DNA of 64,000 nt from Phaeosaccion multiseriatum (lineage: Eukaryota; Protista; Ochrophyta, other classes), in assembly GCA_965112735.1 (NCBI GenBank), contig OZ218950.1, positions 4,402,001 through 4,466,000 of the forward strand, in the 5' to 3' direction. Position 1 is the first letter of the stretch. Every line of letters starts with the position of its first letter. The notes beneath the pieces were generated by a model. The model saw only the letters and a program-made list of their open reading frames with translations, ran no database searches and was not told the origin of the DNA. A program made the position numbers and the translations under genes. Of the stretch, positions 4,145 through 62,002 are shown piece after piece.

Positions 4145-4178
<34 letters not shown>

Positions 4179-31000: not shown

Positions 31001-31915
31001 GCTCCACCTCGCACTGAGTCCGCAGCTCGACGAGGTCGAGCTCATTGCCGCTCATGTCCTGTCCTTTGCGGGGAGCAATCTCCTGGGAGAGGGCGTCCGT
31101 GATGACGATGGAGATGCGGCGCTGGAAGGGCTCTCGAGGGGCCACGAACAAGCCCCCCTGAGGGTTGGACCAAATCGCTTTGAGGCAGCTGCCGATGTGA
31201 GAGCTCTCGTCGTGAGAGAAGCCCGCCAGCACTCGCTCCCCTACACGCAGTGAAAAGGGCTCGTCCATATGCTTGAGGATGCGGCCTCTGTTGGCGTCCC
31301 CCAACGTGGCCACGGCGAAGCGGCACTCGAGGCGGCGAAGCACCTCCATAAGCACCGTCACCATCTCCGCCACGCTGTTACTCACTCGTGTCATGGAGCC
31401 GCTATTGTCCACAAGCACCGCCCACTCAATCTCCACGGGCTCTCCTGCTCGCTCCAGGCTGTCTTGGCTCACAATGGCACGGCAGTCCGAGAGTAAGTCC
31501 TTGACGAGCATAGCGAGGCCCTCGCTCTCCGCCAGCAGCTGGTATGTCCACTTCTCCTGCCTACCCTTGGACGCACGGAACTCAGATGGCAGCACCAGCA
31601 CGCGCGGATCATGCTGTAGCCTAATGTTCCCGGCTCTCTCAAACGTTTCGGTAATGTCCTGGTCACCCATCTTGCGCTCGATGTCCTTGGCGCCCAGCTG
31701 CAAGCTGACCTTGGCGAGCTGCATCTCTGCATACTCTTGCTCCTCAATCTCGGAAGCGTTGACAATCTTGAGGTCGCTCCTGTGAATGGGGGGGGGGCAG
31801 GATCGACACAGTCAAGGCGTCGTGCTCAGGATGGAGAGCATACAGGACATTATTGCTCACACACACGCACCCACACGCACACGCACGCACGCACATGCAC
31901 GCACGCACACGCACG

Positions 31916-31989
<74 letters not shown>

Positions 31990-40900: not shown

Positions 40901-43900
40901 ATCAGGAGCAGGCTTGGGCTCGTACTCCATATACTCGCGCTCCTCCGCTTGCGCGACGAAGTAGGGGCTGTTACTATGGGGCTGCGATACTCGTTCGGCG
41001 TTCCAGTAGCATCCCTCCCATCCGTAGCGCTTTAGGACGCGTATCGTGCACTTCGTTTGCGCTTTGTCGGCACTCGCGAGCCCGAATATGCTCTTGGTGG
41101 AGTCCCACCATCCGCCCCATCTTTTCTTGCCCTCGACTGCTATGGCAAAATCGATCAACGCCGGAGGCTCGGTCAGGCAAGCATACGGGACAAAGACTCG
41201 CAGGCTATGTGGATGAGTGACCTCGACTCTGGTTCGGTGAGTGTCACGACTCAGAGCTTCGGTCGGCTGCTTGTCGATCCTGCCACGGTCTTGAAGCGTG
41301 ATGTGTACAGCCACGCCCGCGGGCCTCGCCTCAAAGTACTTGCCAATGACGGGCCTTGCCTCTGTCCGACATGACTGGAGGAGGTCTCGAAGCATCTTGT
41401 TGACGAAGCGCTTGTCCTGGGCAGCGTCGATCCTTCTGCGCCTCTCTTCCTCCTCGTCGCTGGCTGCTGACTCCTCCTCCCCGACAGCCGGTGCTGCTCC
41501 TCCGCCCCGCACACGTGCTGCTCCTCCGCCCTGCACACGCTCCTCCTCGTTCTGAGCAGCGTCCATCTCTTCCTCCTCGCCGCTGGCTGCTGACTCCTCC
41601 TCCCCGACAGCCGGTGCTGTTCCTTCGACCTGCACATGCTCCTCCTTGTTCTGAACAGCGTCCATCTCTTCCTCCTCGTCGCTGGCTGCTGACTCCTCCT
41701 CCCCGACTGCCGGTGCTGCTCCTTCGACCTGCACACGCTCCTCCTTGTTCTGAACAGCGTCCATCTCTTCCTCCTCGTCGCTGGCTGCTGACTCCTCCTC
41801 CCCGACTGCCGGTGCTGTTCCTTCGACCTGCACATGCTCCTCCTTGTTCTGAACAGCGTCCATCTCTTCCTCCTCGTCGCTGGCTGCTGACTCCTCCTCC
41901 CCGACTGCCGGTGCTGCTCCTTCGACCTGCACACGCTCCTCCTTGTTCTCAGCAGCGTCCGTCTTTTCCTCCTCGTCGCTGGCTGCTGCGTCCGCTTCTT
42001 CTGCTTGTTGCGGTGTGGCAGAGGACTTTCTCTTCACGAGACCGGAATCTGCCATTTGGAAGAGGGCAGCCACACCTTGCTCCACGAGGGCGGCAACGGT
42101 GCCTCGTTCACACTCCCACTCGGACAGTTTGTCCCTGTATCTTTGCTCGTCTTCTCTGGAGCGCTTGAGGTATTCGCCGTACTTCCGCTCCACTCCTTGA
42201 ATCTTCTTCCTTGTCTGTTCGTCCCTCGCTGCGATTCGCTTCTCCAAGACATCCTTCAAGGAGCACAGGACCCTCTCCGCCGCACGCCCCAAGTCCTCCG
42301 CGCAGCCTGCAATCAACATCGAGGGCCTCTGCGGCAAGGCGCTGGAGCTACTCGCGGCGTGCTTCCAAAATGATTGAACGATGCGCTGTGCAAAGGCGTC
42401 CTCTGCATCAAGCACCTTCTGCAGAAGAGGGAAGCCGTCCGTGTCCATCTGCTGGGCATCGCTAAGCGTGGAGAAGAGCGCCGAGACGGACTCGCGGCAG
42501 GCAGCGTAGTGCTCCTCCAGCATGGGGCAGCACACATCGACGCGGAACGACGCCAGCATGAGGAGGTCGAGGACGTCGCTTACGTCTTGCACCCCGAGGC
42601 ACAGCAAGTCCGCCATTGTCTGCGGGACAGAGAGATGATGTATCATCTCCAAGCCCTGTCCTCCTCCTCCCAAGACGGCTTGCTGCCCTCGGATGGCCTT
42701 TACGAGTGTAGCGTAGGGCGACCCCCCTCCTGCGCTTCTGGTGTTGACGAGATCCGCCACGAGCACATGCCGCAGGTCGAGGCTTGGAGAGGGCGCTGCC
42801 TCCCCCCCTCCCTCCTCTGCGGGCAGCGGCACCTTTTGCAGCACATCTTCTTCTTCGAGTGGTCCCAAACGAGCTCTCGTCTCCTCAAACGCAGCTCGAA
42901 TCGCTCTGCTCTGCATGTGAAGCAGCTCCTGCGTAAGCGCTTGCACCACTTCCTCGACATGCTGCGCCAGCTCATCCTGAGACTCTTGCCCTCCTGTCAT
43001 TTCCGTCATCACATCGCCCAAGCTCTGCACCGCTTGGCCTTCCAGCAGCAAACACAGATCCTTTACGCCCTCCATCCTATCATTCACCGCACTGAAATGC
43101 TCAAGCGCGCTCCTCTTGTCTCTGATCACAGCGAAGTGCTCTCTGTCCTCGCCACCTCCGGTGTCCTTGCCTGTCAACCGGACCACCAGGAGGGAGCCCA
43201 GGCAGTGTGAGAGCTGTGCAAGCTGCTCCAGCGCCTTGGATCCCTTGATTCTCGGCGTGAAGAGCCGCGCTTCGCACTTTGCGCCTCCGAAGATGGGCAC
43301 TAGGGTCTGCTTGACCAAGAGATGGGCCACGAAGGATGGGCCAAGGAGGGTTTCATCGTCCAGTAACGAAACGGCCTGCTGGAGGGAGTCGATGACCTCG
43401 AAAGGCGAGCTGGCGACTCCGTATGCAGCGTGGAAGAACGAGCCAAGGAGGGACTGCGAGACAGACCCAAACTGCGCGTAGAGGCGGTCGCTCTCCTCCA
43501 GTAGCTCGTGCGCCTCGAGGCTCAGCAAGAAGGTGTCACCTCGTCTCCTCAGCCAGGAGCCGAAGGCCTCAATGTCCCTGCTCAGGCTGGCTGCACACAG
43601 CTGCTTGGCCTGCACACTGGACAGCAGAGTGTACATGCTGTTCGCAGCGTACGTGCTGATGCACCGCGACTGCTTCCGCACTGACCACTGCGCTCGACCA
43701 TCAAGCTCCACGCCGTGCTGACTCCTCCTCCCTGATGCTGCTGCTCCATCCGCCACAGCAGCAGCCACGTCTTCGAGCTTGACCACCGCTGTCAACACGG
43801 CAGAGGCCTTATCGTGAAGCAGCTCCATGCTGGCAGTGTCCTCCCCGCGCACATGAGCAAACAGAGCGCCCACGTCCTGCATGAGGTCCGGGACGATGGC

Positions 43901-45048
43901 CAAGGCCTGCTCGTGGAATGAGCGCATGGCGGGCCCCAGTGAGTAAGCGGAGCGCACAAAGCCGAGCATGGCCGAGCTGGCGTTGCGCAGAGTCGCGAGG
44001 GCCACCTTCATCACGTCGAGGAGGTGGAACAGCTTCCTACCACAGGGCCCGCTGCGCTTCCTCGCAGCAGAGGGCTCCAAGTCCGCCTCGAGGAGCTGCG
44101 CGGCCTCCTCCACTAGCTCCAGCGCTTCACGGGCTCGCTCGGATGAGTCTCGCAGTGTAGCCTCGTCAAGCCTGGACAGGTCCTCGAGACGCTCAAACTC
44201 GCTGTACATGGCTGCGCTCAGCTCTTCTGGGCCGTCTTCCCAAGCATCGCCACCCCCATCTGCACCGACAGTGCAGAAAGCTCTGAGAAGGAGGCCCTGC
44301 AGCGTCTTGGCCGTTGCCGCCGGCTCTTTCCGCTGACGGTCACCGTCCTCCGACGACTTCTTTCGCTTCCCCTTGGCCTTCTTCTTCAGCTCCTGCACAG
44401 ATTTCCTGAGAGTCTTGACTTCTTCTGCAATTTCTTCGCTTCCTGGACCTTCGATGCAACCTTTCAAGGCATTGATGCGCTCTTCCTTTTCCTCGATCTC
44501 TTTCTCGAGCGACTTCTTGCTGACCCCAGGCGATCCTCCTCCCTTAACAAATCCCTCCAGCTCCTGGACCATCGTCTGCGTGAAGGCAGTGTGGCAGCCG
44601 CGGAGCATGCAGAGAGCGAGGGGGCACTGAAGGGGTATCCAATCGCCCACGGAGCCGACGAGGCCCGAGGCGTACACCCTCATGTCGTTGTCCGCCTCTT
44701 GCCTCGAGTAGACCAGGGAGTTGAGCACCTTGGTCAGGAACAACATCAGATCCTTGAGGTAGGGCACCATTGCCTGTCTCGACTCCTCATCCACAAGGCT
44801 GTGGTCCGTGGAGTCTACACCGAGCTCACTTGCTTGGAAAAGAGACTCCCAGGGAGGCAGTGTCGGCATGTCGCTCGCTGCAGAGGTTCCCAGCAAGAGA
44901 CGGCTGGAGAGGATGGACTCCGCTCGCTGCTCGAGCTTCATGGCGTGGCGCACCAGCTCGACGCAATTGGGGGCGGCAAGGAGGACCACGTCCGACGGCC
45001 TGAGGCTGACCAGCCCCGAAGATCGAAGGCACTCCCCACCGGGGATGC

Positions 45049-45088
<40 letters not shown>

Positions 45089-48000
45089 ACCGCTGCTGTG
45101 GGCCACGCACGGCCCACGGCCTAACACTCCCACCACTTCTATCAGGCGCTGCCGCCTCCGCTGCAGATCTTGCATGTGGACGAAGGAGAGGTGCAGCGGC
45201 GTGCGGCGCACGAGGTGTTGGTTGCGGTCCATGAAGTTCGGTGGGCCTTGCGGAGGGGAGCCTCCTACTTCTTGGCGGATGGAGAAGGGCAAAGCCACCT
45301 CCTCGGGCTGTGCGAGGAGCCTCTGCACGTGCCCATCAAGGAGAGTGGAGGTGCGCTTCGCCACGATTCCCTGCAGCAAGGCCGCTTCCGCCTGCTCCAG
45401 GCCCGTTGTCGACATGTCGGTCAGTGAGCAGCCCTCGCACTGCACCACGCGGTCAAGCTCGGGGATGCAGAGGAAGTTCTGCAAGTCCCGTGCCCTTCTG
45501 TCCTCCTGGCCCTTCATCTGATGTCCATTCCTGAGCCTGTCCAGCAGGAATAGCATCTGACTCACTGCCGACCGCTCCATGCGGATGCGCACTAGTCTGG
45601 ACGAGGTGTCATCGAGGGCCGCTGCGGCGGGCATGCCCTGTCCCGTGGGGTCGCCTGACGGGTTTGGATGTGAAGGGGAGAGAGAGGGGGAGGATAAATG
45701 GGTTTGCGACGAACGAGGGAAAGGCCCACGGGGGTTGACTTTACATACCTACGAAGACTCGAAGCTTGTGCCGCTGCTCTGCTGCGTCTTCTTCCACCAC
45801 GTCCACTCCCTCCTGTGGCACATTCTTCCACAGCTGCTCTTCGCACAGCTTGGGGAAGTCAGCCACCCGCTTCTTGAGCGCTCGAAGGCGAGGAGGCAGT
45901 CGCATGAAGAGGGGATCTGAGTCCTCCGATGCCTGTCGGAACAAGGCCAGCTCGCGCTCTCGGTCCGCGATCCAGCATCTCTCCTCCTTCAGCTCCTTGT
46001 CCACCTGGTGCTTGCTGGGGACCAAGACCTCGGGATCGGAGAGCTTGGAGCGCTTGTCCTGGAGCTTGCCGAGTCTCTTCCGCGTTGTCATGGCCAAGAA
46101 AAAGCAGCCCGAGTCATGAGCGTTCTTGAGCAGTACCTCCATGAGCTTCATGACACTCTGGAGCCCATCCTTCATCTCTGCTCGCTCCCTCGCCGCAGCC
46201 TGCTGCGCCTTCTCTGCTGCCTCTGCCGATGTCTCGTCGCCTCTGCTCGTTGGAGCGTGGGCAATGGCTGAGTGCAGATTGAGCCTGTACTTCTCGATTG
46301 TCGCCAGCGGCACCTCTACTTTCACAAGCAGCTCGTGCATCCTCAACGCCATACCCTCCAAGCTGCTCCGCAGACAATCCTTCTCGAGCAGCACCTCTCC
46401 ATTGTGGGTCTCCAACATCGAGAGCAGCTGCTCCACTACCTCTTCCCACTCCGCTGCGACATGCCCTGAGGCAGCCTCGTACATGCGGGACACTTCCCTC
46501 TCCTCGCCCCTCAGCTGGACGAGCCTCTCTGGAATGAAGGTGGCGATGAAGAGAAGAACATTCTCGAGGCTGGCAAGGAGATGAGCTGCCGCCTGCGCAC
46601 TTGCCATCCTCGTCGTGTCCACAGCAGTGCCTTCCTGCCACTTGTCGAGGACTGCCTTGACGTGGCTGAACAGCCTCGGCTCTCTCTCCACACAGCGAAG
46701 CAGGTGCACCCTGGCGGAGTTGCTTTCGGGGATACCTCTGCGGATGGCATCCTCGCTGTCCGAGAGGCGTTTGTGAGGGTCGACCTGGCTCAGCAACAAA
46801 TGCAGCACCTGTACATGTTGCTCCGTCTCCTCACTGAAAGGCCAGGCTGGTGACGAGACTATGAACAACTTGAGTTCCGCCAGTGTGGTGATGAGCCGCG
46901 TGGAGAAGTGGCTCCCTCCCAACTCCCCTTCCGTGGTCCCCTCGATGGTCCGATACAGTCGTACTCGAACCTCATTGAGCTTCTCCACAATACTTATTTG
47001 AGACGGGCAGAAGGGCTGGACACACAGCGGCAGAGGCGCGCCGGGAGAGGGCGGCGACAAACTCGAGAGTCCTGCCATCGTCGCAGCGATAGCGCCTTGT
47101 AGCCCTGAGATGGTGCAATCTTCCATCAGCTCCACCACCTTGCTGCGCTCCTGCTCTCGGTCTCGGACTTGGAGGCGGAGCCGCGCGAGGTCCTCGATTG
47201 CGTCCATGGCCGTGAGCTGCCGTCCACATCGCTCTTCAGCGTCCCTTGGGAGCAGGCGGTAGACACTCATGCTCCCGTCTTCACTAAGATGCAAGACCAG
47301 GGCTGTGACAGAGAAATCGTCCTTCCCGTCGAACAAGAAGATCACATGTGGCGCTCCGGGCTGCATGTGCTCTAGCAGAGAAGAGGAGACAGGCATGAAG
47401 GTGCGATGCAGTCTTGCCGACGAGCCCTCCTCCTTCAGGATGGAACTGGTGCCGAACGAACACCACAGTGCCACGTCCAACAGAGGGCACCTGAGGTCAT
47501 GCTCTGTCAGAACCTCCAGAGCCTCTACAAAGTTTGATGGTCGCATGCGGTTCACGGCTCCTCCACTCTGAAGTGCGTCCGTCCTGTCCAAGCCGTCCAT
47601 GCGACTCCAGTCTGCCAGTAGAGACGCGACTTTGCCTGCCGCCACGGCAGTGATGACGTGCTCGATCGTTCTCCACTCGGGGGACTCCAGCTGCTCTTGC
47701 ACCCCCTCCAGACCGCCAGACCATGCTGCTTCCATAGCAATCTCCCTCCTCTCCTCCAGCTCGCTTCCGTGCTCCCTCAGCGAAGCCACTTCTGCCTTTA
47801 GCTCCTGCTCCTGGATCTCAAGTTCTTTCTCCAAATTCTTGTCAGCCTTCTGTGGCCATTTACCCAACAAGCTCCAGCTCGTCTCCTTGCGGCACTCCGC
47901 GAGCTCCTTCTGCTTCTCACCCAGCCTGGCCTCCGCTCTAGTGGTTTCCCTTGCGTTTGTAGCCAAGTCCTCCTCCACCTGGCTCAGACTCTCCAGAGCT

Positions 48001-51000
48001 TGCGGAAGTTGTCGAGCAAGGCCTTCCACCATCGGGGTCAGCTCAAACTGCAGCTTGGCAGTGCACATCCCAATCTCCTGCTGCAGAAGCATTTCCATGA
48101 CCTTGGAGTCGCTCCCTCTCATCTCTCCTCCCTCTTGAGGCAGGCGCATGAGGCCTCTCCAGGACACGCCCAGCCACCGGAGAGAGGCGGCCAGCTGCTG
48201 CAAGCGGGGGGAGAGGCTGCCGGCTGCTGAACCCTCCTCTTGAATCAGCAAAGTGAGGAGCCGGCTAATGTCCTCCTCGGCAGAAAGGAAGGGGGCGACC
48301 ATGTCCCGCTGGAGGATGTACATCCTCGTGCCCTGTGCGTCACGCATGGGCTGCGACACTTGCTCATAGAGCAGCCGCAGACGTTGTCCACTCAAAAGTC
48401 GGACCCAGGGCAGAAGCTTCTCCTCCACGACGAACAGGCTCTCCAGCAGGGTACGGCCGGGCACCAGTAGGTCAGCGGTGTCTTGCTTCTTGGTGCCATC
48501 TGCGGGAGCGAGGAGGCCCAGCAAATGCCTCAGTCGGCTGCAGATGGAGCTGACTCTCCTCAGCTCGAGCTCCCGGACCTGGGCGTCGACAATGGACACC
48601 TGCTTGGTGTACGTCAGGAGGGTGGCGAGGAGGCTATTGGCGAGCGCCGGCGCGTGCTGCATGCACGACCCAGCGTCACTCTGGGACAACAAGCCGTCGA
48701 GGCTCAGTCGAGAGAGAAGCGCGACCCTGTCCTGCTCGACAGAGTCCTCGTGCGGCGCGGCAGAGCCAAAGCTGTCCATGTGCTGGGTGATCGCAACCTC
48801 GATGGCTTCCGCCTCGCCTGCTCCAAGGTCCAGCGGAACAAGCTTTCCTCGGACAAGGTAGCGAGCAGCCGTGCAGAACTGCGCGGTGGGTGCGCTCATG
48901 AGTGCCCTCGCTACGCCTCGGAGAACGAAGGACTCTGCCGCCTGGAGCGCTCGTGCAAGGGCGAGGCGATGAACTTGCCACGGCTCCCCTCGCTCCGATG
49001 CACTAATCACGGGCACCACGGGGAGCGATTCAGCCGCAACAGCTTGACTGCAGAGGAGTTGCACCAGCTTTCTCATCTGCCTCTCCGACGCCGCGAGGAT
49101 TCCGTGACCCGCCTCTCTCTGCATCGTGTCCTTGACACAGTCACAGTAGTTCCTCACGATTGCCCACACGAAGGCGTTCAAGGGGCTGACTCCTCTTCCT
49201 GCCGCTGCTGCTGCTGCTGGTGCTGGTGCTGCTGATTGGGTGGGCAGTTCACCACCCGTGCCGTTGCCCGGATGAAGCTCCATGAGGCGCGTTGCCGTGT
49301 CGATGGTGCGAAGCATGGTGCGGAAGGTGATCTGCACGTCCCCCACGAGATAAAACTCCTTTCGCCGAATGGAGTGCTTCGTGGCGGCATGCACCTCGAG
49401 CAGCAAGTGCACGAGCCTTTCCTTGCCCTCAATGTCGGGCAGCAGGCTGTACAGGATGGAGGCAATGTCGAGCTGAGCAAAAGCTTGCGCGCTACCGCTG
49501 GGCTCTGCTGCCAAGCCCTCGATGCCCACGTCCAACGGTGGCAGCCAAATGCGCACCATGCGATTCAGCAGCGCACTGGACAGCTTGTTGGAGCTGCAGC
49601 GACTGCTGTTGGCCGTCGCGAAGATGCGGAAGTCCGGATGAATGGAGTTGTCTGCCCTCCTGAGCTCCTCTCCATCCCCCTTCTCCAGCAGCGCCAGCAG
49701 CGGCGAGTCCTCAAAGAGCGAGTTGAGGCGCTCCACCACCTCACCTGGTGCGCTATCGATATTGTCGAGCATCACCCAGTGACCCTCTCGCATGGCCGTC
49801 ACGAGCTCGCTCTCCACGAATTCAAACACCAGCGTCGTCGGCTCTCTGCTCAACTCCTCCTCTCCTCTCCCCGCACCAGCTCCCAGGAGTAGTTCATCAA
49901 AGTCCGTCTGCAGCTGCTTCTGGAGGCGACGCCCGTTGTCTCGCACGCGATGATGCATATCTGCCAGCACGCCACCGTCGTACTCGCGACAACAGAGGCG
50001 CTCAAGACACTCACTGATCGTCCCTACCGCGGTGGCGACAGCCTCTTCGCCGCCGCTGCCCTGGCTGCTCCATGCCTCGACAGCCAACTTGATGGCCGTC
50101 TCGGTCTCTTGCAGCAAGTACTCCGCAGTCGCGTGCTGACCTTTGCGCTTGGCCTCCGCCGCAAGGAGGGGGCGAATGTTGACGAGGAGGAGCTGAGACG
50201 CGGCCTGCATCCGCAGCATACAGGCATGCCACATGCCCTTCTTGTGCTCTTTGACGCTGGTGGGTAGCAGCTGCCCAATGAGGTCGGACGTCTCCATCTC
50301 GTGCGTCATGGCCACCTCCACCAGACGCCTCTTGCACAGACGGGCAAGCTCCCGCACGATGCTGCTCTTGGCGCTCGCAGTGTCTCCCTCCAGCAACACC
50401 GCTCGCTTGCTTTGTGCGGCTGCTCCCAGAGCCTCGAGCAGCTGCACCGTGCGGTGGGAGTGCACCATAGCAACACCCGTCGCTCGTCCGTCCTCTCCTC
50501 TCTCCGTCTCCATCTCGCCTTGAGCCAAGTACACGGAGCCAATCCGAATCATGCCCGGCACAGAGTCGTCGATCTCGTCGGAGTGAGTCAGGTTGCGCAG
50601 TCGTGTAGACACCTGGAAAAACTCCGACCTGTCGATGACCTCCTGCACCCTGCTCTGGTTCTCTGCACTATGGAAGCGCCGGGCATACACCAGTGAGAGG
50701 AACTTGTTGAGAGCAAGGACGCGCACATCCGTGTCTCCCCCCTGCGGCTCTCCACCCACGTCGCCGGCTTTGTTGTAGAACCGAAAGTGGTCTTTCAAGT
50801 TGGCAGCATTGCTCTGGAGAATGTCCCGCAACTTGAGCAAGTCTCGTACGTTGAGCTCGTACGGAGCGCCTCGCAGTCCAATTTCTCTCTGAGACACGAG
50901 CTCCGCCACCTCGCAGTGCACTTGAAAGACAGCCTCGAGCTGCTCCGCTGTGATGACGCCCTCCTGCTGCTGCTCCGCCAACTCGCCTCCACTACTGTCT

Positions 51001-54000
51001 ACCCCCATGTCAATGAGGGAGAGGAAGTGGTACTTGGTGATGTCGAAGGTCTCGTCCCTGGTGAAGGGCTCGAGCTCCACACACGTGAACATGGCATCCA
51101 CAGAGCGAGGGAGCCGCTTCCGGCCCCCTCCTACATTGGCGGGGTTCATCGTGGCGAAGAGGCGAACGCCAGTGAGGTCCTCTTCCTCAAGAATCTCGCC
51201 GCTGCCAGGCACCACGTACTGGCTCCTTCCTCGCGTCATCAGAGGGACCAGACCCTCCAACACCTCAGGAGGAGCGAGGTTGATTTCGTCGAAGAGCACC
51301 CACTGCCCCTGCTTGAGCGCCGTCAGCAGGCTCCCGTCTTGCCACCTAAAGACGCGCTTGTGCCCATCCGAGCTTGGCACAATGCTCCCGAATAGCATCT
51401 CCAGGCTGGTGTTGGTGCTAAAGTTGATGCGCTGCACCTCGTAGCCCAGCAAGCTCGCCGCCGCCTCCACACACGCCGTTTTGCCCACCCCCGGAGGCCC
51501 TCGGAGCAAGAGGGGCGCGTCCGCGGCGAGGCAAGCGAAGATCCGTGACATATTCTTGAGGGTGGTGGCCGTGCAGTGCAGCCTCATTCTGTGTCTGAGC
51601 TCGAGCGAGTCGCCTCTGTTCCGACACTCCTTCATTTCATCCGAGTCCGCAGGAGATGCCGTCACACCACCATAGCTGCTCTGCACGAGGCCGGCCTTTG
51701 TCCAGCGCAAGGGCGTTTGCAGCGCGTCCGGCGACGGCTCCCCCGCAATGTCCCTCAGGAACGGCTTGGAGGCACCGAGCTGCTGCGCCTGGCACCAGTC
51801 CTCCAGGAGGGCAAGCACGCCATCGGTAGGCACCGCGTCATCCAAGACGAAGAAGCGCACACCCACAATCATGCTCGTCTGGAGCTGCAGCAGCAGCAGT
51901 TGTGCGTCTGCTGATGCTGCCCTCGCGCCCACTCGAAGGGCGGCGGCAGAGGCCGTGTAGTCGCACACCCGAAGGAGGTGGGCGAGGCTGATGGCGCTCT
52001 TGCGCGAGGCGCGACGCCCCTCCTTCAGCCTCTGCCACATGGCCTTGAGGTGGGCAGCGATGGTGTTGGAGGCAGTCCCAACGTCATGCCGCTTCAGCTC
52101 CTCGCCCACACCCCTCTGGAGGGACATGAGACGCCGAGTCAGCACCCGGCTTAGCAGCTGCTCGATCTCTGCGTCTGCGTAAGAGGGAACCACACTGGGA
52201 CAAGGGATGAAGACGAAGGGAGAAAGAGCACACGAGATCAGGGGGGTTGAGGGGTCGTTCGGGAAAGAAACCGCCAACACAGATCCCCTCTCTCTTTCCG
52301 AGCGAAGCCACCCCCAACTTACATCTCTGTGAAGCGTGACCTTGTCGCAGGGCTCACGTTGATCCGATCATTCGCGGTGTCGCGGTGGATGGAGGCGAAG
52401 ATTTGCATCTGGGCAGGCACGCCAATGGTCTGACCTCCCGTGGCCGTTTCTTTGGGCCCGCCCCTGCCCGACGAAGGGATGCGCCGAGAAATATCCTCCG
52501 TCAGGTTGAAGGTGCGTCCGGGCTCGAGAAGGCTGTTGAGCCGCTCGGTCACGGACTGCTTTGGCAGATTGAAGTCCGCCAGAAACAGAGCCTGCGAGGA
52601 TGGAGAAGAGGTCAAGGGGTGAGCACGAGAACACGCGAAGACGGAGGAACGCACAGCGAGGCCGAACACTATCGCGCTCTGCTCTCACCTTGCCCTCCAG
52701 AACGGCGCGAGTCACTGGGCCTTCCCTGAAGCTGAAGATTGGGTCGGAGCTGTCGTCGTCAAACGTCTATTACAGGGTATGAAGAGGGCATGATGGCAAG
52801 ATCGAGGGTCGTGTTTAAGTCACAGGAGTAATGAAAGGCGTACATAGGTGAGAGTCATGGCTTCAACGTCGCCCCCACTCACCCTTCGTATTGCCCCTGT
52901 GAGGAAGGACAGCTTCTCTGCCAGCTGCTTGACAGCGTCGTCAGCCTCCCGCACCGAGTAGAGGAGCTGCTCGCGGATCTTGCCGGTCCTTTGAAGACAG
53001 TCTCGCATGGCCGCCACCAGCTGCGGACTCTTGGCGGGCTTGACCTTTGCAACTCTCCGGTGATCTGCCTCCACCGCAGCAAAGCCACTCAATCGTCCGT
53101 CTTGCACCGGCTCCTGAGCTGCTTCCTCCATGTCGGATGAGGAGGAGGAGCTGCGTCGCAGCTTCATGGGAACACTCTCGCTCTCACTCTCGGAGGAGGA
53201 GCCACAGCGGTCGCCAGAGAGTGGTGGTGGTGGTGGTGGTGTTGGTGGTAGGGCACTCGCTGCTACCACCACCCCTGTCCCTGTAGATTCGTCCTCGTCG
53301 GATGAGGAGGAGCTGCGGCTGCGGGGAGGTCTTACGGGTACTCTCTCACTCTCACTCTCAGAGGATGAGCCATGGCGCCCTCCCGGTGTGGGTGCGGCAT
53401 CATCGGCATCAGGCGCAGGTGGGTCGAAGACAGACCACTCTCCGTCGCTAGCGGTCTCGCCTCCACTCGACTCGTCATCTTCATTGTCATCGGTGGAGTA
53501 TCCGTCCAGGAAGTAGGAGTGCTCGTCCTCAGCATCACTCGAAGCTGGCTTGGGGCTGCTTCCTTCTCCATGTTGAGCGTTCTCGCACTCATCGCTGTCG
53601 TCGTCGGCGTACTCATCGAGGAGGGGTACCGCGGAGCAAAGCCCTTGAGCTTCGCCTCCTTCACACTCATCATCCGACAGGTCCTCCTCCTCCTCCTGTT
53701 GTGCGGTCTCTGCCTCCTGCTTGGACAGCCGAGCGAATGCGTCCATGGCGACACGAAGCTGCAGGGCCTGGTCGCGGAGATCGGAAAGGTCAGCGGCTGG
53801 CGCCTCTTTCCCCACTCCCACCACGTCGAGTCTCGCCACTGCCCGAAGCACGCTGTCGTGGACTTCCTTCATTGCCCCTTCCAAGCTAAAAGGGTACATT
53901 TGGCCGACCAAGTCTGCCCCTTCAGTCTCCGGGGACAGGAAGCAGCGTTCCAAGTGGTGCGAGTCGCTTCGTCCCGTGATTGCTGCCCACGTCTCCACCA

Positions 54001-57000
54001 GAAGCTTCTTGCAGGCGGTGGGGCCCACCAGCAGCACGGGCTCGTGGTTCTCGGTGGCGAGGAGGAGCAGGGCAAGGGCGCGCAGGAAGGAGGTAGGCAT
54101 GTCCTCCAGCAAGGCGTGCACTCCCTTCACGTCCACGCCCTCGATGGCCTTGCTCAGACTGCCCAGTCTCACGATGAGCTTGCCACCAGCAACCGTAATG
54201 TCGCACGCCGCTCTGGCGGTGGCAGCGTGGGCCGTCGGAGGGGTGGTGTGGTGCAGTCCAGAGAAAGGTAGCAAGTCATGTGCGCCGGCACCTACTCCAC
54301 TACCAAAGCCCTCGTGCAAGGCGCTCACGACGCGATCGAACGCGTCTTGAGTGGCGGTGCTGGAGAGCAGAAGGCTGGCGCCCGCGAGGTACCAGTGCTC
54401 CTTCTCGTCGACATTTCCCGTGGGGAAAAGGAGCTTGCGCCGCTGCGACCACTTGATGAGATGGCGCAGAGTGATGCGATTCCGCACATCCCCCGTCGCC
54501 AGCACCTCGTACACCGCCGCCAGGCACTCGGCAATGCTCTGCCCGCAGCTGCCCTCCTCCCACTCCATGAGGATCTGCTCCACCTCCACTCGCGTGAAGT
54601 CCTGCATCTGCACCTCAGAGAAGCGGCTGCGGAGGGTCGAAGGAAGCACATTGCGCCCAGCGTACCTAACCATAATGTATAGAGAGAGAGAGCAAGGAAG
54701 AGAGAGGGAAGGTAGACGCACAGCGAGTCAGCGATGATGCTTGGGAAGAGAGGAGACGAGAGGGGACGAGAGAACAAGAGAGAGGTAGAGATGAAGAGGG
54801 GAAGAGACGAAGAGACTCACCCACTGGCGTTCTGTGTAGCGAAGAAGCGGAAGCCATCTGCCGCTCGAATCTTTTCTGCAGTGCCAGGCACAGACAGAAC
54901 TGCGCCCGCCCCTCCCTCCAGCAGAGGCGCCAGCATGCTCAGCACGTTGGGGTCCGCGAGGTTGAACTCGTCTGCGAGGAAGTAGCTGCCGCTCTTCATA
55001 GCGCGGTAGAGAGCGCCTTCCTGGAACTCAAAGCGGTTGCCCACAGGAATGGGTGAGCCGAGGTAGTCCTGCATGGTGGTGGTCTGCGTGTTGTTGACTC
55101 GCTCCATGTGCACGCCTGCTGCGGTGGACAGCTCCACGAGAAGGGAGGTCTTGCCGCAAGACGCGGGGCCTTCAAGCAGCACAGGGTAATTGCACACGAT
55201 GGCCCCCTGCACCTGCTCGGCGTAGGCTTTGCGCTGCTCGGTGAAGACGTGCCTCTCGGAAGAGGACGAGGTGGAGGTGCTGTCGAAGAGAGAAGGGAGA
55301 GCGCACCCTCTAAGGGACAGCCGCGAAGCCACTTCTTGCGCCATACGCTCGCCTTTGCTCGAACTCTTGAAGAGGCCGGCGACAACAAGCTGAAAGGCCC
55401 CGGCGAAAGCGCTCTCGATGGAAGGCACGCTGGCCTCTCTCTGTACCCGCAGGCGGAACGTGCTGTCGAGAAGTCTCGTCAAGTGGCGAAAGGTGAGCTG
55501 CTCGCCAAGCAGGGCCGCGTCCAGCTGGCCGGGGCCGATCTCCGACCACACATAGAAGCACACGTCAACGATGCGTCCGCACGCGGTGCTGCTCTTGTCG
55601 ATGCCCAGGAGCGCCGTCGCCAGGACCCGCACCTCTTCCTTGAAGGCGTGCTCGTCCTCGACCCGAATGTCTTCCATATACACGTTGGCCAAGCGGTTAA
55701 GCAGCGCCGGGGAGGGCTCCGGCGATGGCCGAGAGCTGTGCCCCACCGAGGCCACGTTGGGGTCTGCGACGGTCATGGTGGCAAAGGTGCGGAAGGTGGG
55801 AGCTTTGGCGTTCACGGGGTGCCACGCCTCGTTCGGGTCTGTCTCTCCATTCTCCGTCAGTCGCCAGTCCACAGGGTCCTCTAGCAGGGGGTTGAGTCTC
55901 TCGAGCACGCAGGCGTCGGCATCACTGATGTTGTCCAGCAGCAGGAAGCTCTTGTCACGCAGCGCTTGCGTCACCAAGCCGTCTTGCCAGGCGATGCGTG
56001 GAGTCGAGACGGCCGCAGCTGCAGCCGTAGTCCCGGGCTCGGCGCAGCTGCTGCTGCTGCTGCTGCTGCTGCTACTGCGTGGTGTCTGCCCACCCACGAG
56101 CAGCGACACGTCCGTCTCCGGCGTGAGACAGATCTGCACGCACTCCATCTGGCAAAGCTCCGCCATGGCCAGGATTAGAGCGCTCTTGCCTGCCCCCACG
56201 GGCCCGACCAACAGCGTGGGAGTCTGGATGCGGCAGCACCTTGGGGGTTGCAATTGAATTGTGCAGACAGCAAAGAACAAGAACAAAAAAAGTAGGGGGA
56301 GTGGGTGGGTGGGCAAGGTAAGCGAAAGGGCGGACTGAGAAGGTAAGGCACCAGCTCCCCCGTACATGGCCCTCATATCTCACCTGGCGATCTGCATCAG
56401 CGATCTCTTGAGTCTCGGCGTGAGAGCAAAGGGGGCCGCGGGGACCCGCGTCAGCGCCTTGTCCTCGTGCTCGCGCTGGACTCGCTCCACTGCGGCGCGG
56501 TGAGGGCTCTCGTATCCCGCCACGTCCAGGATGCTCTGCACGACCATTGCCACGGCGTCTGGGTGTCGGAAGCGGTGTAGATACACTCGAGCAGCGGCAC
56601 TAACGACCACACTCTTGTCCAGCGCAAGTGGGCCTCCGCTGCTGTTGCTGCTGGTGGTGGTGGTGCTGCTGGTGGTGGTAGCGGTGGTGGGGGTGGTACT
56701 CTGTTCCACCGCCAGTGCGAGCAGGTCTTTGCAGCAGGAAGAGATGCCAAAGTGAATGCCAAATCGGCTGAAGAAGCCCTCGGAGAAGACCATCCTGCAC
56801 ATGGCCACATGCATCCGAAAGACCAGTCGAAGAGACGCCTCGTCGATGCGCGAAGCGAGCGCATGCTGCTGGGTCTTAAAGAGCTCGAAGACCGCGCCAT
56901 CCTCCTCATTCACCAGGCCGATGGAGAACTGCCCCGGCGAGGGAAGTGTGACTCCGTCGAATGGTAGGCGCACCTCTCCGATGCTGACTCCGCTGCAGTC

Positions 57001-60000
57001 GACGCGCAGGGGCACTTCTCCTCCATGCCCTTCGCATGCCGCTGCCGATGGCCACAAGTCGGCGATCATCCCTGCCACCACTCCTCGCGTAGACGCCTGC
57101 CGGAAGCGCGCTCCGTAGGTGCCCCACATCTCGAAGCCAACAATGGCGGCCAGGTCATCGACGCTTTCACCGGAGGACAGCCGCTGAAAGGCATGATCCT
57201 TGACTTGCAGCAGCTCGCGGATAGAGGTGACGGCGTAGCCCTTGCGCTCGGTAAAGGCGGGGAAGTCTTTTTCAGCAGCGTCTTGAGAGCCCTGCATCCA
57301 GCGGCCGAGGCTGTCATGGAACTCCACCATCTGCTGGGCCTGTACGGCGAATGTGCACTTGTGCTGTGGGTGGGTGGCGACGAAGAATGACTGGAGAACG
57401 TCTACCCACTCCTCCTTGGGCAGCTCCGCAAAGGCCAGTGGCATGAAGCGACTGAGGAAGCTCTCGGAGAGCTGCTCGCGCTTGCCCTTGAAGAAGCCCG
57501 AGTTGGGGTTCTGCGTGGCGAACAGTCGGAAGTCCTTGTGCCTCTCAATGACACGGATGGCAGTGGAAGCGTCAGCGGGGTTACGCAGCGTGAGTCGGCC
57601 CGTGTCGAGGGCGCCCTCGATAGACTGCAGCACTGAGTCTTGGGCGAGGTTGACTTCGTCGAGCAGCAGCCAGTGGCCATCCCGGAAGGCCACGGTGAAG
57701 GGCTGCTCCATCGTGGCGAACTCGTCGTTCGAGGTCAACACGACATGCCCGAACAAGTCATCAGTCGTCACAGTTCGGCTCATCTGGAGGGAGGAGGAGC
57801 AGAAGGTGGAGGGGGAGCAGAAGAAGGAAGGAAGAAACAGAGTAAGCAACGATAAATCGAGGAGTAGGATTGACATGAATGTGTAGAGACACATGCACAC
57901 AGACAGCCGAACTTACATTGAAACGAACGAGCTTTCTTCCGACGCTCTCCGCTGCCTTCTGCACAGTAGCGCTCTTGCCCACTCCGGTGCCGCCCTCCAG
58001 CAGAATGGGGGCCCGACTGTCCGTCAGCAGAAGCACCTTGTCCAAGTTCTTCTGCGTGGTGCGAGTGAGCACCATCTTGCTCTCTCCCGCCTTCACCCCT
58101 TCTCCTCCTCCAGCCGCCGTCTGCGGTGCGGGTATGTCCAGGATTTCGTTGACAGAGACGCCGCCACCACCACCACCTCCCTTCTGTGCGTGTGCTCCTC
58201 CACTGCTCATCCTCCGGCCTTCAGCCGCAGGCTGCTGCTTACTCTTCACTTTGAGCTTGTCTGCCATCCTCTGGAAGTGAGAGGTCTTGAGGGAGTCCAG
58301 GGGGGAGATGGCAGAGAGCGACTTGGTCGTCGCGCTCTCACTCAGGTAGAGCCGCCCATCGCTGGACGCTGCCTCGGCTGTGGCAGTGGCCTTCCGCAGT
58401 GCATCGCCGGCTTCATCGTCCGCCGCTGTGTCTCCGCAGTGGTTCGCGGCGCAGAGGGCCTCTGTCTGGGTGTGACTGAGGCTGAGGGCCTTGGCGAGCA
58501 GGGCAGTCACAAATGTCCGAACGTCCTTGGATGGGTGCGTCGAAAGGCCCAACAGCTCAGGGACACACGCCCCGATGAGATGCAAACTCCGTTGGCAAAG
58601 CACACTTGTCAGTCGCCGCAACTGAGCCTCCTGCTCGAGGGAGGGAGCTGGGCTGCCACCGAGCTGCACGAGACACCTCTTCACAAAAGCAACGCGCGTC
58701 AGACGCTCTTGCATATGTGCCTGCTCCGACCAAAACGGAGTGGAAGCCGGGAGGACATCCAGCACTCGAAGAAGGTCCTCGTCCACCCACGGTGCCGCGA
58801 GGAAGCACGCCAACTTGTCGTCGCTCAGAAGTATCTCCTGCAGTATCTGCAAAGACCTCTGAGAGCCGCTCTCCACATTGGTGTCTGTGGCGGTCCACGA
58901 CCAAAGGACGCGCAGCAGCCGCACCTGACACAGCACCAGAGACCTTCGGAGTGAGACAAGAAGCTCCTCCACCCCTTCGGCGAGCAGGGGCGATTCGTGG
59001 AGAAAGAAGATTAGCGCAGAGCCTTCCGTCCCAAAGAGTCTCTGAAGGTTGGGGATGGGCTCCTTGGAGGGGTCCGTCATCTCCAGCAGCATGTTGGTGA
59101 GCCACAGCAGGGTGGACATGCTGCTCTTGGCGGAAGGCACCGCGGATTGGGCCTCCTGCAGGGTGGCCAGGAGGATGGATGGCACCCCCGCAGCAACGTC
59201 CCTCGCCAGCTTCGCATCTGGACAGTCCACGAGGTGCTTGTAGACCGCGTCGCTGGTGTTCTTGAAGTAGGGTTGCACGCGATCCGTGAGCAGCTGCAGA
59301 GCGCACGCGGGTTGTTTCTTCGCAGAGGCCACGATGAGGGTACACAGCGTCTCTGGTGTCGCGTGGTGCGGGTTGGCGTAGAGTATAGACAGCACTTGAG
59401 ACACCTTGTCGCCCACCAAGTCTTGCAGCTCCTCTACCGAAGCGAGCTGCTGGGAGGACACACGATGAAGCTCGTGCTGTGCGAGCGCCTCCAGCACGAC
59501 CTGGCAGCTTAGCGCGGCCTCAATATCCTTCCGAGAGATGCCCTCCTCTTCCTCCTCCCCGCTGTTGTCCAAGCGACGGTATAGCAGGGCGAGAATGTCG
59601 GTGATAATCAGCAGCAGAGCACTTTCTTCAGCCCCACCCGCAGATGCTTTCAACTTCTCGCGAAGCTGTACCAGCACGACATCGAGGAGCCACTTGCCAC
59701 CGAGTCTGCTGTCCACGCTGTCCTCGCCTAACGACCTCTGCAGCGCTGGAAGGCACGCCTCAATCGCCCAGGAGTCGCTGCTCGTCACCACGCTTTCAAA
59801 GACCTCTGTCCAGTGCGAGGCGAAGGATGGTAGCTGACACGCTTCGTACAGAGGCATGGAGAGCGCTCGTGCCAGTCGCGGAGAGCTGAGCATGGGGCCT
59901 AGCAGCAGCTTCACTTTGGCCTCTGCTGGGGAGGAAGTGGGATCTTGTAGCAACAGGCCTCCTCCCTTGCTGCGCCCGTGGAGCAGGTCGACAAGCCACG

Positions 60001-61096
60001 TGCATGTGTGCTCGAGCCACGTGTCGGGGCTCAGGAGGAGAGACAGGAGCCTCTGTCGTTCCGGGCACGTCGGAGCCGCTTGAAGGAAGCGGGGTGTGAA
60101 AGGCTTCCGAGACCAAGCGCCGTCACTCCATCCCAGCCAGTGAGCCTTGGCGAGCTCCGGGTGAGCGGCCTCGACGTCACGGCCTAGGAGAAGGGGCAGT
60201 GCGCTTAGTGACACATCGCTCTTGACGGGATTGACACCCTGTGCCGGGTAAAAGCCTTTAGAACGGACGGGGTGGGGGGGCAGTGGGGAAGGGAAGAGGT
60301 GGTGGATGGACAGGCCCGTGAGTGAGAGGTTGGAAGTAGACCATGCCAGGCGAACAAAATACACAAAACAAGCAGTAAGGGGATGTGTACACTTACCCTT
60401 GCTGGGAGCTGCGGGGTAGAGAATGAGGCTCCATAGCATGAACAGAGGGGAGAGACTGAACGGGCCCAATCCTTGTCGTCGCAGCAGTGGCAAGGATTGC
60501 AGCTGGTCCTGGTGCCTGAGTCGCTCCAGAAGGGCACTGATGAGGCGGTAGGCATCGTCCACCGCCACCGCAGAGAGGGGGGGCGTGGACTCATCCTGGC
60601 CACTACGCGGCGGAGAGAGCTTCAGCTTAAAGTCTTGGCTGACTGTGCAGCTGTATAGCGCCTTGATAAGGTGCGGCAACAAGAGGATCACGCTCTCCTG
60701 AGCAGCCTGAAGCCCTTCTGCTGAGACACATCGGCACCTCGCCACCAGCCGCCAAGCCTGCCAGACGACCCCACCAGCCTCCACGCTCAGCCACGGGAAA
60801 GCCTCCATACTCTCCCCTCGACAAGCCCTGAAGGAGCGACCATAGAGCCCCTCCTCATTCGGCAGCAGGATAAGCTGGTTCAGGTCCTGGATTTCCGTCT
60901 CGCTCAGACTGTCTGCAGTCACCCGTGAAAGCTCGGCGGCGAAAGTACGGAGAGCTACCGTCGCTGCCTCCTCTTCCTGCTGTGTAGCAGCAAGTCTTCC
61001 TGGTTGCTCCTGCTGCAGTCCTTTTGCAAGAGCTTTCAATCTCTTTCGGCAAGCCTTGTCCCACACATAGAGCTGGGAAGAGAACGAGGATGCCAT
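28032..61096 (-). CDS. Giant midasin/Rea1-like protein (~10,472 aa): 6 AAA+ modules, long linker, ASH/PapD-like Ig repeats, Gly-Gln repeat, 4 vWA domains
   Basis: Exons 61096-60397, 60255-57917, 57783-56384, 56239-54821, 54665-52883, 52766-52689, 52591-52323, 52194-45749, 45654-36769, 36581-33265, 33038-32005, 31779-28032. Total 31,419 nt; all 11 introns are GT-AG and phase-compatible. Splicing restores split motifs ([16 protein letters not shown]; [22 protein letters not shown]; [23 protein letters not shown]; RSRFTE/IVVPSY). Walker A motifs [53 protein letters not shown] motifs DNSGS, DISQS, DVTGS, DESGS. Confidence 0.85.
31919..31986. repeat. (CA)n microsatellite in the last intron of the giant gene
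   Basis: Pure CA run within intron 32004-31780. Confidence 0.95.
33612..34630 (-). repeat. ~1-kb hexamer array (GGTCAG)n, read as (Gly-Gln)n in exon 10 of the giant gene
   Basis: (CCCTGA)n on the + strand. Variant units keep the 6-bp period and give GE, GL, DQ, SQ, DH with no stop in the gene frame. Confidence 0.95.
41450..41990 (-). repeat. Coding 99-bp (33-aa) tandem repeat, ~5.5 copies, acidic
   Basis: [17 protein letters not shown](R/H)VQVEG(A/T)APAVGEEES. The anchor CTGGCTGC recurs at 41583, 41682, 41781, 41880, 41979. Confidence 0.95.

Positions 61097-61392: not shown

Positions 61393-61479
<87 letters not shown>
61393..61479. repeat. (CA)n microsatellite between sufD and the giant gene
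   Basis: Pure CA run. Confidence 0.95.
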
Positions 61480-61486
<7 letters not shown>

Positions 61487-62002
61487 CACACTTTCAGTTT
61501 CTTGGGTGATTCCTATCAATATTTTCTTGCTCTTGCAAGGAGTGCATGGGCGGGCGGGGCGGCGCGGGCTGTCTGTGGGTATCGTACGGCAACGGCATGC
61601 AGGTATCGGTGTTCTAGTGAAGCATCAGCACGACACCCCCTGCGCGTTACCTTTATCCACGGACAGACACAAACACACATCGGTTTTTTTTTCTTAGGTG
61701 TTTCCTATTAAGTCAATAAGTAATCCCCACACTCCTCCCCTTCCTCCTCTAATGTAACATTGTATTTCTTTCTCAACTAGTGTATCAAGCTCCTCCCTTC
61801 GTTACTGCTCCTCGAGCGTTACTCACTGCCCTCTCTCTATCGCTCTCCTCTTCTTCCCCCCCCCCCCCGCCCCATCCCCTCCCGATCCTTTGACGAAACG
61901 CACAATTCACGTGGCGCCTCCCCTCCTCTTATCCTCTTCTCTAGACGGGGGAGGATCTCCTCCTCCTTCTCCTCTTCGTCTTCTTCTGATTCTTCTTCTT
62001 CT

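Follow-up and report, generated by a model that had tools for sequence, protein, structure and literature searches.

The window, by which we mean the whole stretch of 64,000 nucleotides analysed here, derives from the ochrophyte Phaeosaccion multiseriatum (GenBank assembly GCA_965112735.1, contig OZ218950.1, positions 4,402,001 to 4,466,000 of the forward strand) and carries on its minus strand a chain of long open reading frames (ORFs) that would together form a putative single giant gene (28032–61096; ~33 kb, 10–11 thousand codons). The predicted layout of this gene is an N-terminal extension, a ring of six AAA modules, a long tail and four VWA domains: on the ring side the chain comprises the frames 57761–61096, 56380–57900, 54817–56376, 52820–54721, ~52319–52669 and 45741–52280, which are followed on the tail side by 36737–45634, 33040–36504, 32001–33038 and 28032–31724. 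The DNA is ~60% GC and nonetheless maintains open frames of 2179 and 2965 codons. In our assessment the region probably encodes the single-chain, six-module ring of a giant (~10,000 aa) midasin-like mechanoenzyme, which would belong to an ancient and patchily distributed sister family of MDN1/Rea1 rather than being MDN1 itself.

Pfam identified AAA_5 domains in four exon pieces, together with the midasin lid PF17867, in pieces lying between 45741 and 57900, and mapping against Mdn1 resolved six tandem AAA_5 modules in one chain. The best match of the ring among solved structures was Mdn1 of S. pombe (6or5, E 2e-113), with the alignment covering the AAA ring only. Through three-frame reading and motif mapping we located all twelve Walker A and Walker B strings and the six arginine-finger segments on the minus strand between 49557 and 57994, reproducing every string that an earlier, sequence-only reading of this DNA had listed. 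AAA1 (57445–57994) exhibits the Walker A motif GGTGVGKS (57971–57994), the Walker B motif WLLLDEVN (57649–57672) and a finger segment ending in FLSRF (57445–57471), with a short GT-AG intron (57784–57916), one of several in the ring, placed between the two Walker motifs; AAA2 (55690–56205), preceded in the spacer by a further GT-AG intron (56240–56383), contains GPVGAGKS (56182–56205), FLLLDNIS (55924–55947) and a finger segment ending in LLNRL (55690–55716). The corresponding strings of AAA3 (54620–55170) are GPASCGKT (55147–55170), YFLADEFN (54961–54984) and LRSRF (54620–54646), the last of these being separated from sensor 1 by a GT-AG intron (54666–54820), and those of AAA4 (52331–54025), a module split by two introns that flank a mini-exon (52689–52766), are GPTACKKL (54002–54025), ALFLADFN (52568–52591) and TRSRF (52331–52357). 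AAA5 (51087–51500) displays GPPGVGKT (51477–51500) and WVLFDEIN (51279–51302), with the arginine-free segment VDAMF at the finger position (51087–51113), and AAA6 (49557–50387) displays GDTASAKS (50364–50387), WVMLDNID (49755–49778) and a finger segment ending in LLNRM (49557–49583). Fingers are present in modules 1–4 and 6 and missing from module 5, as had been described.

Taken from AAA1 to AAA6, the Walker B series of the window is DE-DN-DE-AD-DE-DN. AAA1 and AAA3 exhibit a complete catalytic motif set and keep their own arginine fingers (LSRF and RSRF), and AAA5 combines a complete set of cis motifs with the loss of its trans arginine finger; in AAA2 the P-loop is intact and the finger (LNRL) is kept, with the Walker B glutamate replaced. 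The sensor-1 asparagine is present in AAA1 (ATQN), AAA3 (ATQN), AAA5 (ATMN) and AAA6 (ATAN) and has been lost from AAA2 (ATMT) and AAA4 (ASIH): these two losses provide independent support for the alternation of intact and degenerate modules. In case of AAA4, both Walker motifs are broken as had been described, and the reading of Walker A required one refinement, GPTACKKL being better read as GPTACK-K: relatives exhibit GPTxxK[ST], a loop that is one residue short through deletion of a glycine, and in the window its Ser/Thr has become lysine. The modules also differ at helix 2, with AAA2 lacking a large insert (Walker A to Walker B spacing of 86 aa), AAA4 bearing an acidic, serine-rich, low-complexity insert of ~350 residues at this position (52820–53800, minus strand) and AAA6 an insert of ~200 aa.

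Relatives of the ring were collected by a word search with the AAA5–AAA6 part of the large exon (120 best matches, range 1198–3813 aa) and by a second search, with a Tetradesmus protein as the query, that brought full-length proteins into range; all modules of the 232 proteins collected were then mapped by phmmer onto AAA5 and AAA6 of the window and the motif columns were read. The nearest relatives (Ectocarpus, Tetradesmus, Rotaria and unnamed metagenome proteins) are 33–47% identical, compared to 25–29% for canonical midasins, and the second search added Hondaea fermentalgiana, a Prymnesium metagenome-assembled genome, Bryopsis sp. KO-2023 (BSKO_02574), Hariotina reticulata, Epipyxis sp. and many Adineta and Rotaria proteins. 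The resulting group, here termed the 1-3-5 family, comprises 44 proteins (33 with six recognised modules) from brown and golden algae, a labyrinthulid, a haptophyte, green algae and bdelloid rotifers. Nearly all 44 members share the Walker B series DE-DN-DE-ED-DE-DN, and the pattern of intact modules 1, 3 and 5 and degenerate modules 2, 4 and 6, which had been proposed for the window, was found again in 33 of 33 relatives that have six modules, individual sites showing single exceptions. Given this recurrence, the 1-3-5 pattern as read from the motif columns is far beyond chance. The bdelloid rotifers (Adineta, Rotaria; P0122–P0135, P0144, P0156, P0015, P0035) hold many copies in at least two divergent lineages, which may reflect horizontal acquisition followed by expansion; other animals among the matches are represented by canonical midasin only.

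At the level of individual sites, AAA1 of the family has an intact P-loop in 29/29 cases, DE at Walker B in 31/32, the sensor asparagine in 33/33 and the finger arginine in 21/25; the equivalent figures are 32/32, 30/32, 33/33 and 32/33 for AAA3. AAA5 is similar in cis (P-loop intact in 33/33, DE in 32/33, sensor asparagine in 31/33), and its finger arginine is found in none of 32 proteins, being leucine in 25. AAA2 keeps the P-loop (32/33) and the finger arginine (23/23), lacks the Walker B glutamate throughout (0/33, with DN in 30) and has the sensor asparagine in 3/28. AAA4 is marked by the seven-residue P-loop GPTxxK[ST], present in all 29 members with a recognised AAA4 P-loop, by ED at Walker B (31/33) and by a sensor histidine (28/32), with the finger arginine kept (30/30), and in AAA6 a P-loop glycine is replaced (by R, K or A) in 22/33, with DN in 25/30, the sensor asparagine in 22/30 and the finger arginine in 30/30. 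The Walker A to Walker B spacing in the family is 69 aa (median) for AAA2, ~390 for AAA4 (273–483 aa across the family) and ~181 for AAA6. Of the defining family marks, namely the Walker B series, the seven-residue AAA4 P-loop and the loss of the AAA5 finger arginine, the window possesses all except for AD in place of ED and lysine in place of Ser/Thr in AAA4. Since the replacement residues are themselves conserved (ED 31/33, histidine 28/32, leucine 25/32), they point to a new constraint and not to drift: the pattern is kept within the family, random degeneration was not found among the homologues, and the 1-3-5 arrangement is, on this reading of the motifs, a conserved design and not decay.

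As a comparison set we used 174 canonical midasins with six recognised modules, with diatom, oomycete, green algal, plant, animal and fungal sequences among them; the second search had returned named canonical midasins from Nitzschia (diatom), Saprolegnia (oomycete), green algae including Bryopsis (BSKO_01177), plants, animals and fungi. The 174 proteins exhibit ED in AAA1 (160/174), DE in each of AAA2 to AAA5 (174/174) and DN in AAA6 (138/174), in agreement with the literature on Rea1/MDN1, where AAA2–AAA5 are functional and AAA1 and AAA6 are without Walker B (PMC6286127, PMC5116814, PMC6920918); the statement in the sequence-only reading that canonical Rea1 is intact in modules 2–5 agrees with these counts. 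Canonical AAA1 is also without an arginine finger in our motif table, as in PMC6920918, which indicates that the alignment column is correct. The stramenopile MDN1 orthologues from Nitzschia and Saprolegnia are canonical (ED-DE-DE-DE-DE-DN) and do not share the pattern of the window. Further differences concern the AAA2 Walker A to Walker B spacing, 176 aa in canonical midasins versus 69 in the 1-3-5 family, and the N-terminal part before AAA1, ~250–400 residues versus ~1000 in the window. Module scores gave one-to-one best matches to canonical midasin for modules 3, 4 and 5 (3-3, 4-4, 5-5; AAA3 118 bits), and AAA1 of the family is closer to canonical AAA3 and AAA5 than to the degenerate canonical AAA1. 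These scores fit a six-module common ancestor with more active sites and suggest that each lineage silenced a different subset.

In a tree of the AAA5–AAA6 segment, a new clade of 30 rows is separated from a canonical clade of 26 rows with 100/100 in the Shimodaira–Hasegawa-like approximate likelihood ratio test (SH-aLRT), the stems amounting to 1.77 and 1.66 changes per column. Both clades contain stramenopiles, green algae and metazoans, with the canonical one branching along organismal groups; within the 30-row clade, which also holds Hondaea, Prymnesium, Tetradesmus and the rotifers, the window groups with Ectocarpus as its sister (SH-aLRT 95–98). The approximately unbiased (AU) test rejects both a single stramenopile clade (delta log-likelihood 467, p 1.6e-27) and a single green-algal clade (454, p 7e-68), and in Bryopsis sp. 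KO-2023 both kinds of gene coexist, as BSKO_02574 (P0155) of the family and BSKO_01177 (P0147) of the canonical type. Where the sequence-only reading had suggested a motor differing from midasin in its firing pattern, the tree and the AU test place the gene in a separate paralogous family: by its motifs and its position in the tree, the window gene is a member of this family and not the Phaeosaccion MDN1, the analysis of the source genome covering the 64-kb window. A search of the literature found no description of this family or of a midasin paralogue, which is not proof of novelty; the family is apparently undescribed.

What each site of the ring could do depends upon its geometry. In Mdn1/Rea1 the site of module n uses its own Walker A and Walker B motifs and the arginine finger of module n+1 (PMC5116814, PMC6286127): the AAA1 site uses R2 (PMC5116814), and it has been stated that 'AAA5L H4 provides the arginine finger for the AAA4 site' (PMC6286127). 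Within the RxRF motif, the second arginine is the critical one (PMC5116814). Under this rule the missing AAA5 finger pairs with the dead site 4 and not, as had been supposed, with AAA6. Site 4 is degenerate on both faces of the AAA4/AAA5 interface, with a short P-loop, ED or AD at Walker B, a sensor histidine and leucine or methionine at the AAA5 finger position, and looks dead or empty. Site 2 looks able to bind ATP and not to hydrolyse it, with P-loop and trans finger kept, DN at Walker B and no sensor asparagine. The finger of site 6 comes from AAA1, where it is kept here (LSRF) and absent in canonical midasin; by its motifs site 6 has DN as in midasin and a variable P-loop, such that the even sites 2, 4 and 6 are not equivalent. 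Sites 1, 3 and 5 present GxxxxGK[ST], hhhhDE and the sensor-1 asparagine together with trans fingers from modules 2, 4 and 6.

All searches, for the ring and for the parts outside it, were performed on single exon pieces, with the 33-kb gene model being a prediction from DNA. The ring exon is joined to the tail exon by an intron (45655–45748, minus strand; GTATGT...CAG) that keeps the frame from 45741–52280 to 36737–45634, and relative P0146 is collinear with the window across this exon junction, the match being weak. The N-terminal extension of ~1000 residues before AAA1 (58100–61096, minus strand) lies in an open frame of 1111 aa, and upstream of residue ~1006 of this ORF no Pfam, PDB or blastp match was obtained; a (CA)n microsatellite (61393–61491) is situated just upstream of its first ATG. 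The 2965-aa tail exon (36737–45634, minus strand) consists of a helical part, an acidic tandem repeat and a beta-rich part: a PDB search returned chance matches to single-chain antibody fragments (scFv) only, and when the N-terminal extension and the tail exons were compared with the relatives by blastp, almost nothing emerged apart from weak matches to P0146. Within this exon, a 99-nt unit repeated 4.8 times at 41515–41988 (95% matches) translates to a 33-residue acidic repeat that recalls the D/E-rich region of midasin. The beta-rich part (37355–39937, minus strand) displayed sub-threshold Pfam matches to Cep192 domains 3 and 6, a CFAP65 Ig-like domain and FixG_C (Cep192_D3 at E 3e-5, below the Pfam cut-off), and these matches, all sub-threshold, suggest PapD/ASH-like Ig folds; an AlphaFold2 single-sequence model of this part had a mean pLDDT of 33 and was unusable.

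The following ORF (33040–36504, minus strand) contains at 33610–34631 ~170 copies of a hexanucleotide (ACCCTG on the plus strand), equivalent to ~340 residues of (GQ)n, which may be coding or intronic, and at its end a (CCTCCT)n tract (33073–33245) that in minus-strand reading gives an extended poly-Arg/Lys stretch and may be an intron or a nuclear-localisation-like tract; a (CA)n microsatellite between the last two ORF pieces (31858–31986) is probably intronic. The last ORF (28032–31724, minus strand) holds four VWA domains (Pfam VWA_2, VWA, VWA_3, VWA_4) with MIDAS-type DxSxS motifs at ORF residues 106, 535, 781 and 1036, the third being DxTxS, and shows weak similarity to the Rea1 MIDAS domain 6qt8 (E 8.8e-5). 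It aligns over 780–880 residues to the C-termini of P0121 (Hariotina; 31% over 780 aa), P0012 and P0145, relatives that combine AAA modules and a VWA C-terminus in one protein, and this argues that ring and VWA region are parts of one protein in the window as well. No Pfam VWA match was found in the scanned C-terminal parts of P0132 (complete ORF) and P0155, and hence the multi-VWA region may not be universal in the family. Plus-strand ORFs inside the gene region were without a Pfam match, and we regard them as chance frames driven by the GC content. Elsewhere in the window, an unrelated 1078-aa ORF (2694–5930, minus strand) encodes a Laminin_G_3/concanavalin-A-like lectin domain (E 3e-8).

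Could the gene nevertheless be a strongly diverged MDN1/Rea1 orthologue of its host, with the pattern being a midasin variant peculiar to its lineage? In favour of this, the six AAA_5 modules follow the midasin order, the tail is long, the VWA-containing C-terminus weakly resembles the Rea1 MIDAS domain, and databases automatically name several relatives 'Midasin'; nevertheless, Nitzschia and Saprolegnia orthologues are canonical in pattern and clade, Bryopsis holds both kinds of gene, the AU test rejects grouping by organism, and the region exhibits no similarity to the Rea1 linker, no AAA2 helix-2 insert and four VWA domains instead of one, all of which makes orthology highly improbable. Less credible still is a decaying or pseudogenised midasin copy in which the broken motifs result from random degeneration: whilst three modules do have non-canonical motifs, low-complexity tracts are long and additional catalytic residues are missing from the Bryopsis relative, frames of 2179 and 2965 codons persist in DNA of 60% GC, the splice sites preserve the frame, and more than 30 relatives across several eukaryotic phyla share the same substitutions with conserved replacement residues, with 'intact' motifs kept at 94–100%.

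The remaining alternatives concern the working of the ring. The sequence-only reading had envisaged pseudo-three-fold symmetry of the ring, with the finger lost from AAA5 serving the degenerate AAA6 site, and the alternation of intact and degenerate motifs at its base was reproduced; its detail was not, because fingers act on the site of the preceding module (PMC6286127, PMC5116814), the AAA1 finger for site 6 is kept (LSRF; arginine in 21/25 of the family), and sites 2, 4 and 6 have each degenerated in a way of their own and carry very different inserts (~69, 390 and 181), such that we regard this arrangement as very unlikely. A more serious alternative accepts the family and denies the three-site motor: one site, for example AAA3 or AAA5, would drive the ring and the other intact sites would be regulatory or slow, as dynein relies mainly on AAA1. 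Contributions of the sites are unequal in dynein and in Mdn1, where one site may supply about half of the activity (PMC5116814); the closest conservation with canonical midasin is found in AAA3 and AAA5, and the even modules differ from one another, leaving the ring without symmetry. Against this, the odd sites and their trans fingers are conserved at >90% across the family, which argues that each is needed; we consider a single driving site possible, if rather unlikely. The sequence is compatible both with three firing sites and with one dominant site of the dynein kind.

Several points weigh against our preferred reading of a 1-3-5 ring in a sister family of MDN1. The catalytic competence of sites 1, 3 and 5 is deduced from their motifs; turnover can survive replacement of the Walker B glutamate, and intact motifs are no proof that all three sites fire. 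The Bryopsis member BSKO_02574 is without Walker B glutamate in its six modules (EG, DN, DN, ED, DG, EN), and so the 1-3-5 set is not maintained everywhere; this protein keeps the P-loops of modules 1, 2, 3 and 5 and may be a secondary pseudo-ATPase. The tree covers the AAA5–AAA6 segment only (56 rows, 632 columns), was obtained by a quick search and is unrooted, and the AU test used 22 rows under LG+G4 with groups named after the tree had been seen. The patchy distribution could stem from horizontal transfer in place of ancient duplication, with the bdelloid copies as the likeliest case. Finally, the 33-kb gene model is putative, and its (GQ)n and poly-Arg tracts may be non-coding.

Within the 1-3-5 reading, a three-site firing cycle is plausible. 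Hydrolysis of ATP would be confined to three alternating interfaces (1/2, 3/4 and 5/6), with site 2 and perhaps site 6 holding nucleotide as structural or regulatory sites, a role known from AAA1 and AAA6 of Rea1 and from AAA2 of dynein, and site 4 would be an empty, fixed joint bearing the insert of 270–480 residues. Motions of the ring could then be transmitted through the long tail to the four C-terminal MIDAS-type VWA domains, which would grip a substrate by metal-dependent contacts and pull, as Rea1 does on Rsa4 and Ytm1. In Rea1 the AAA2 helix-2 alpha insert is an autoinhibitory plug; this plug is absent here, and as a consequence regulation would have to differ from that of Rea1.

Comparison with known systems reveals midasin as the closest: like MDN1/Rea1, the window encodes in a single chain six AAA_5 modules with DN in AAA6, the PF17867 lid, a long tail, acidic stretches and C-terminal MIDAS-type VWA domains. 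It differs in its predicted complete sites (1, 3 and 5 rather than 2–5), in an AAA1 set that appears complete with finger, in an AAA4 that appears dead, in a huge AAA4 insert in place of the AAA2 helix-2 alpha plug, and in an N-terminal extension of ~1000 aa, four VWA domains instead of one, roughly twice the length and a separate clade. In Rea1, a single C-terminal MIDAS domain binds the ubiquitin-like (UBL) domains of Rsa4 and Ytm1. Similarity to the Rea1-type linker was not found by phmmer against PDB midasin chains, which aligned the ring only, although a shared fold is possible. Dynein heavy chain is likewise a single-chain hexameric AAA+ ring of the helix-2-insert clade with a mixture of catalytic, binding-only and dead sites: AAA1 is its main site, AAA2 only binds, AAA3 and AAA4 hydrolyse, AAA5 and AAA6 are dead, and it has no VWA domain. 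The window ring gave weak matches to dynein AAA modules (E 1e-6); unlike dynein, it is without a stalk or microtubule-binding domain, and among dynein-specific domains (linker DHC_N2, stalk/microtubule-binding domain, AAA lids, C-terminal domain) no Pfam match was above threshold, just sub-threshold PF03028 and PF12775.

VWA8, a eukaryotic protein of mitochondria and peroxisomes, unites dynein/MoxR-type AAA modules and a VWA domain by fusion (PMC10743472). At ~1900 aa, with AAA_5 modules and one C-terminal VWA domain, it is set apart from the window family by description; no protein named VWA8 occurred among the 120 best matches (1198–3813 aa), where fragments of canonical midasin were present, and the family is on this basis closer to midasin than to VWA8. 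Bacterial MoxR-type AAA+ rings pair functionally with a MIDAS/VWA substrate-binding domain (PMC3495828), and the window shares the AAA clade and the AAA plus VWA pairing with NorQ/NorD, CbbQ/CbbO, RavA/ViaA and the Mg-chelatase BchI/BchD, with weak PDB matches of the ring to NorQ and CbbQ. Unlike the window protein, in which six diverged modules and four VWA domains are predicted in one chain, those systems form homohexamers from one-module subunits and have their VWA domain on a separate protein. Alternation of three catalytic with three non-catalytic or degenerate nucleotide sites in a six-membered ring is also seen in F1-ATPase (alpha3beta3) and in alternating heterohexamers such as Pex1/Pex6. 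These are functional analogies only, with unrelated or distant folds and separate subunits, and in the window the non-catalytic sites are non-equivalent.

These findings bear on how the six non-identical sites of single-chain AAA+ rings such as dynein and midasin share their work. The family may be regarded as a natural experiment on the midasin scaffold, in which the AAA1 set appears complete, AAA2 and AAA4 appear inactive, degeneration has affected the two faces of the AAA4/AAA5 interface jointly and no AAA2 plug is left. More tentatively, and with somewhat less than even confidence, we suggest that it joins dynein, midasin and RNF213 as a fourth eukaryotic mechanoenzyme with a hexameric AAA+ ring in a single chain: an early-diverging sister of midasin with catalytic sites 1, 3 and 5, two nucleotide-holding sites and one empty joint, which would use four MIDAS domains for pulling unrelated to ribosome assembly. 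The process served by such an enzyme might be tied to flagellate or ciliate cell stages, to judge from the range of taxa in which the gene is retained and from the Ig/PapD-like signals of the tail. For annotation, the consequence is that algal, labyrinthulid and rotifer proteins of this family that are automatically named 'midasin', 'MoxR-like ATPase' or 'dynein heavy chain' are not MDN1, a misnaming that matters both for annotation itself and for orthology-based inference about ribosome biogenesis.

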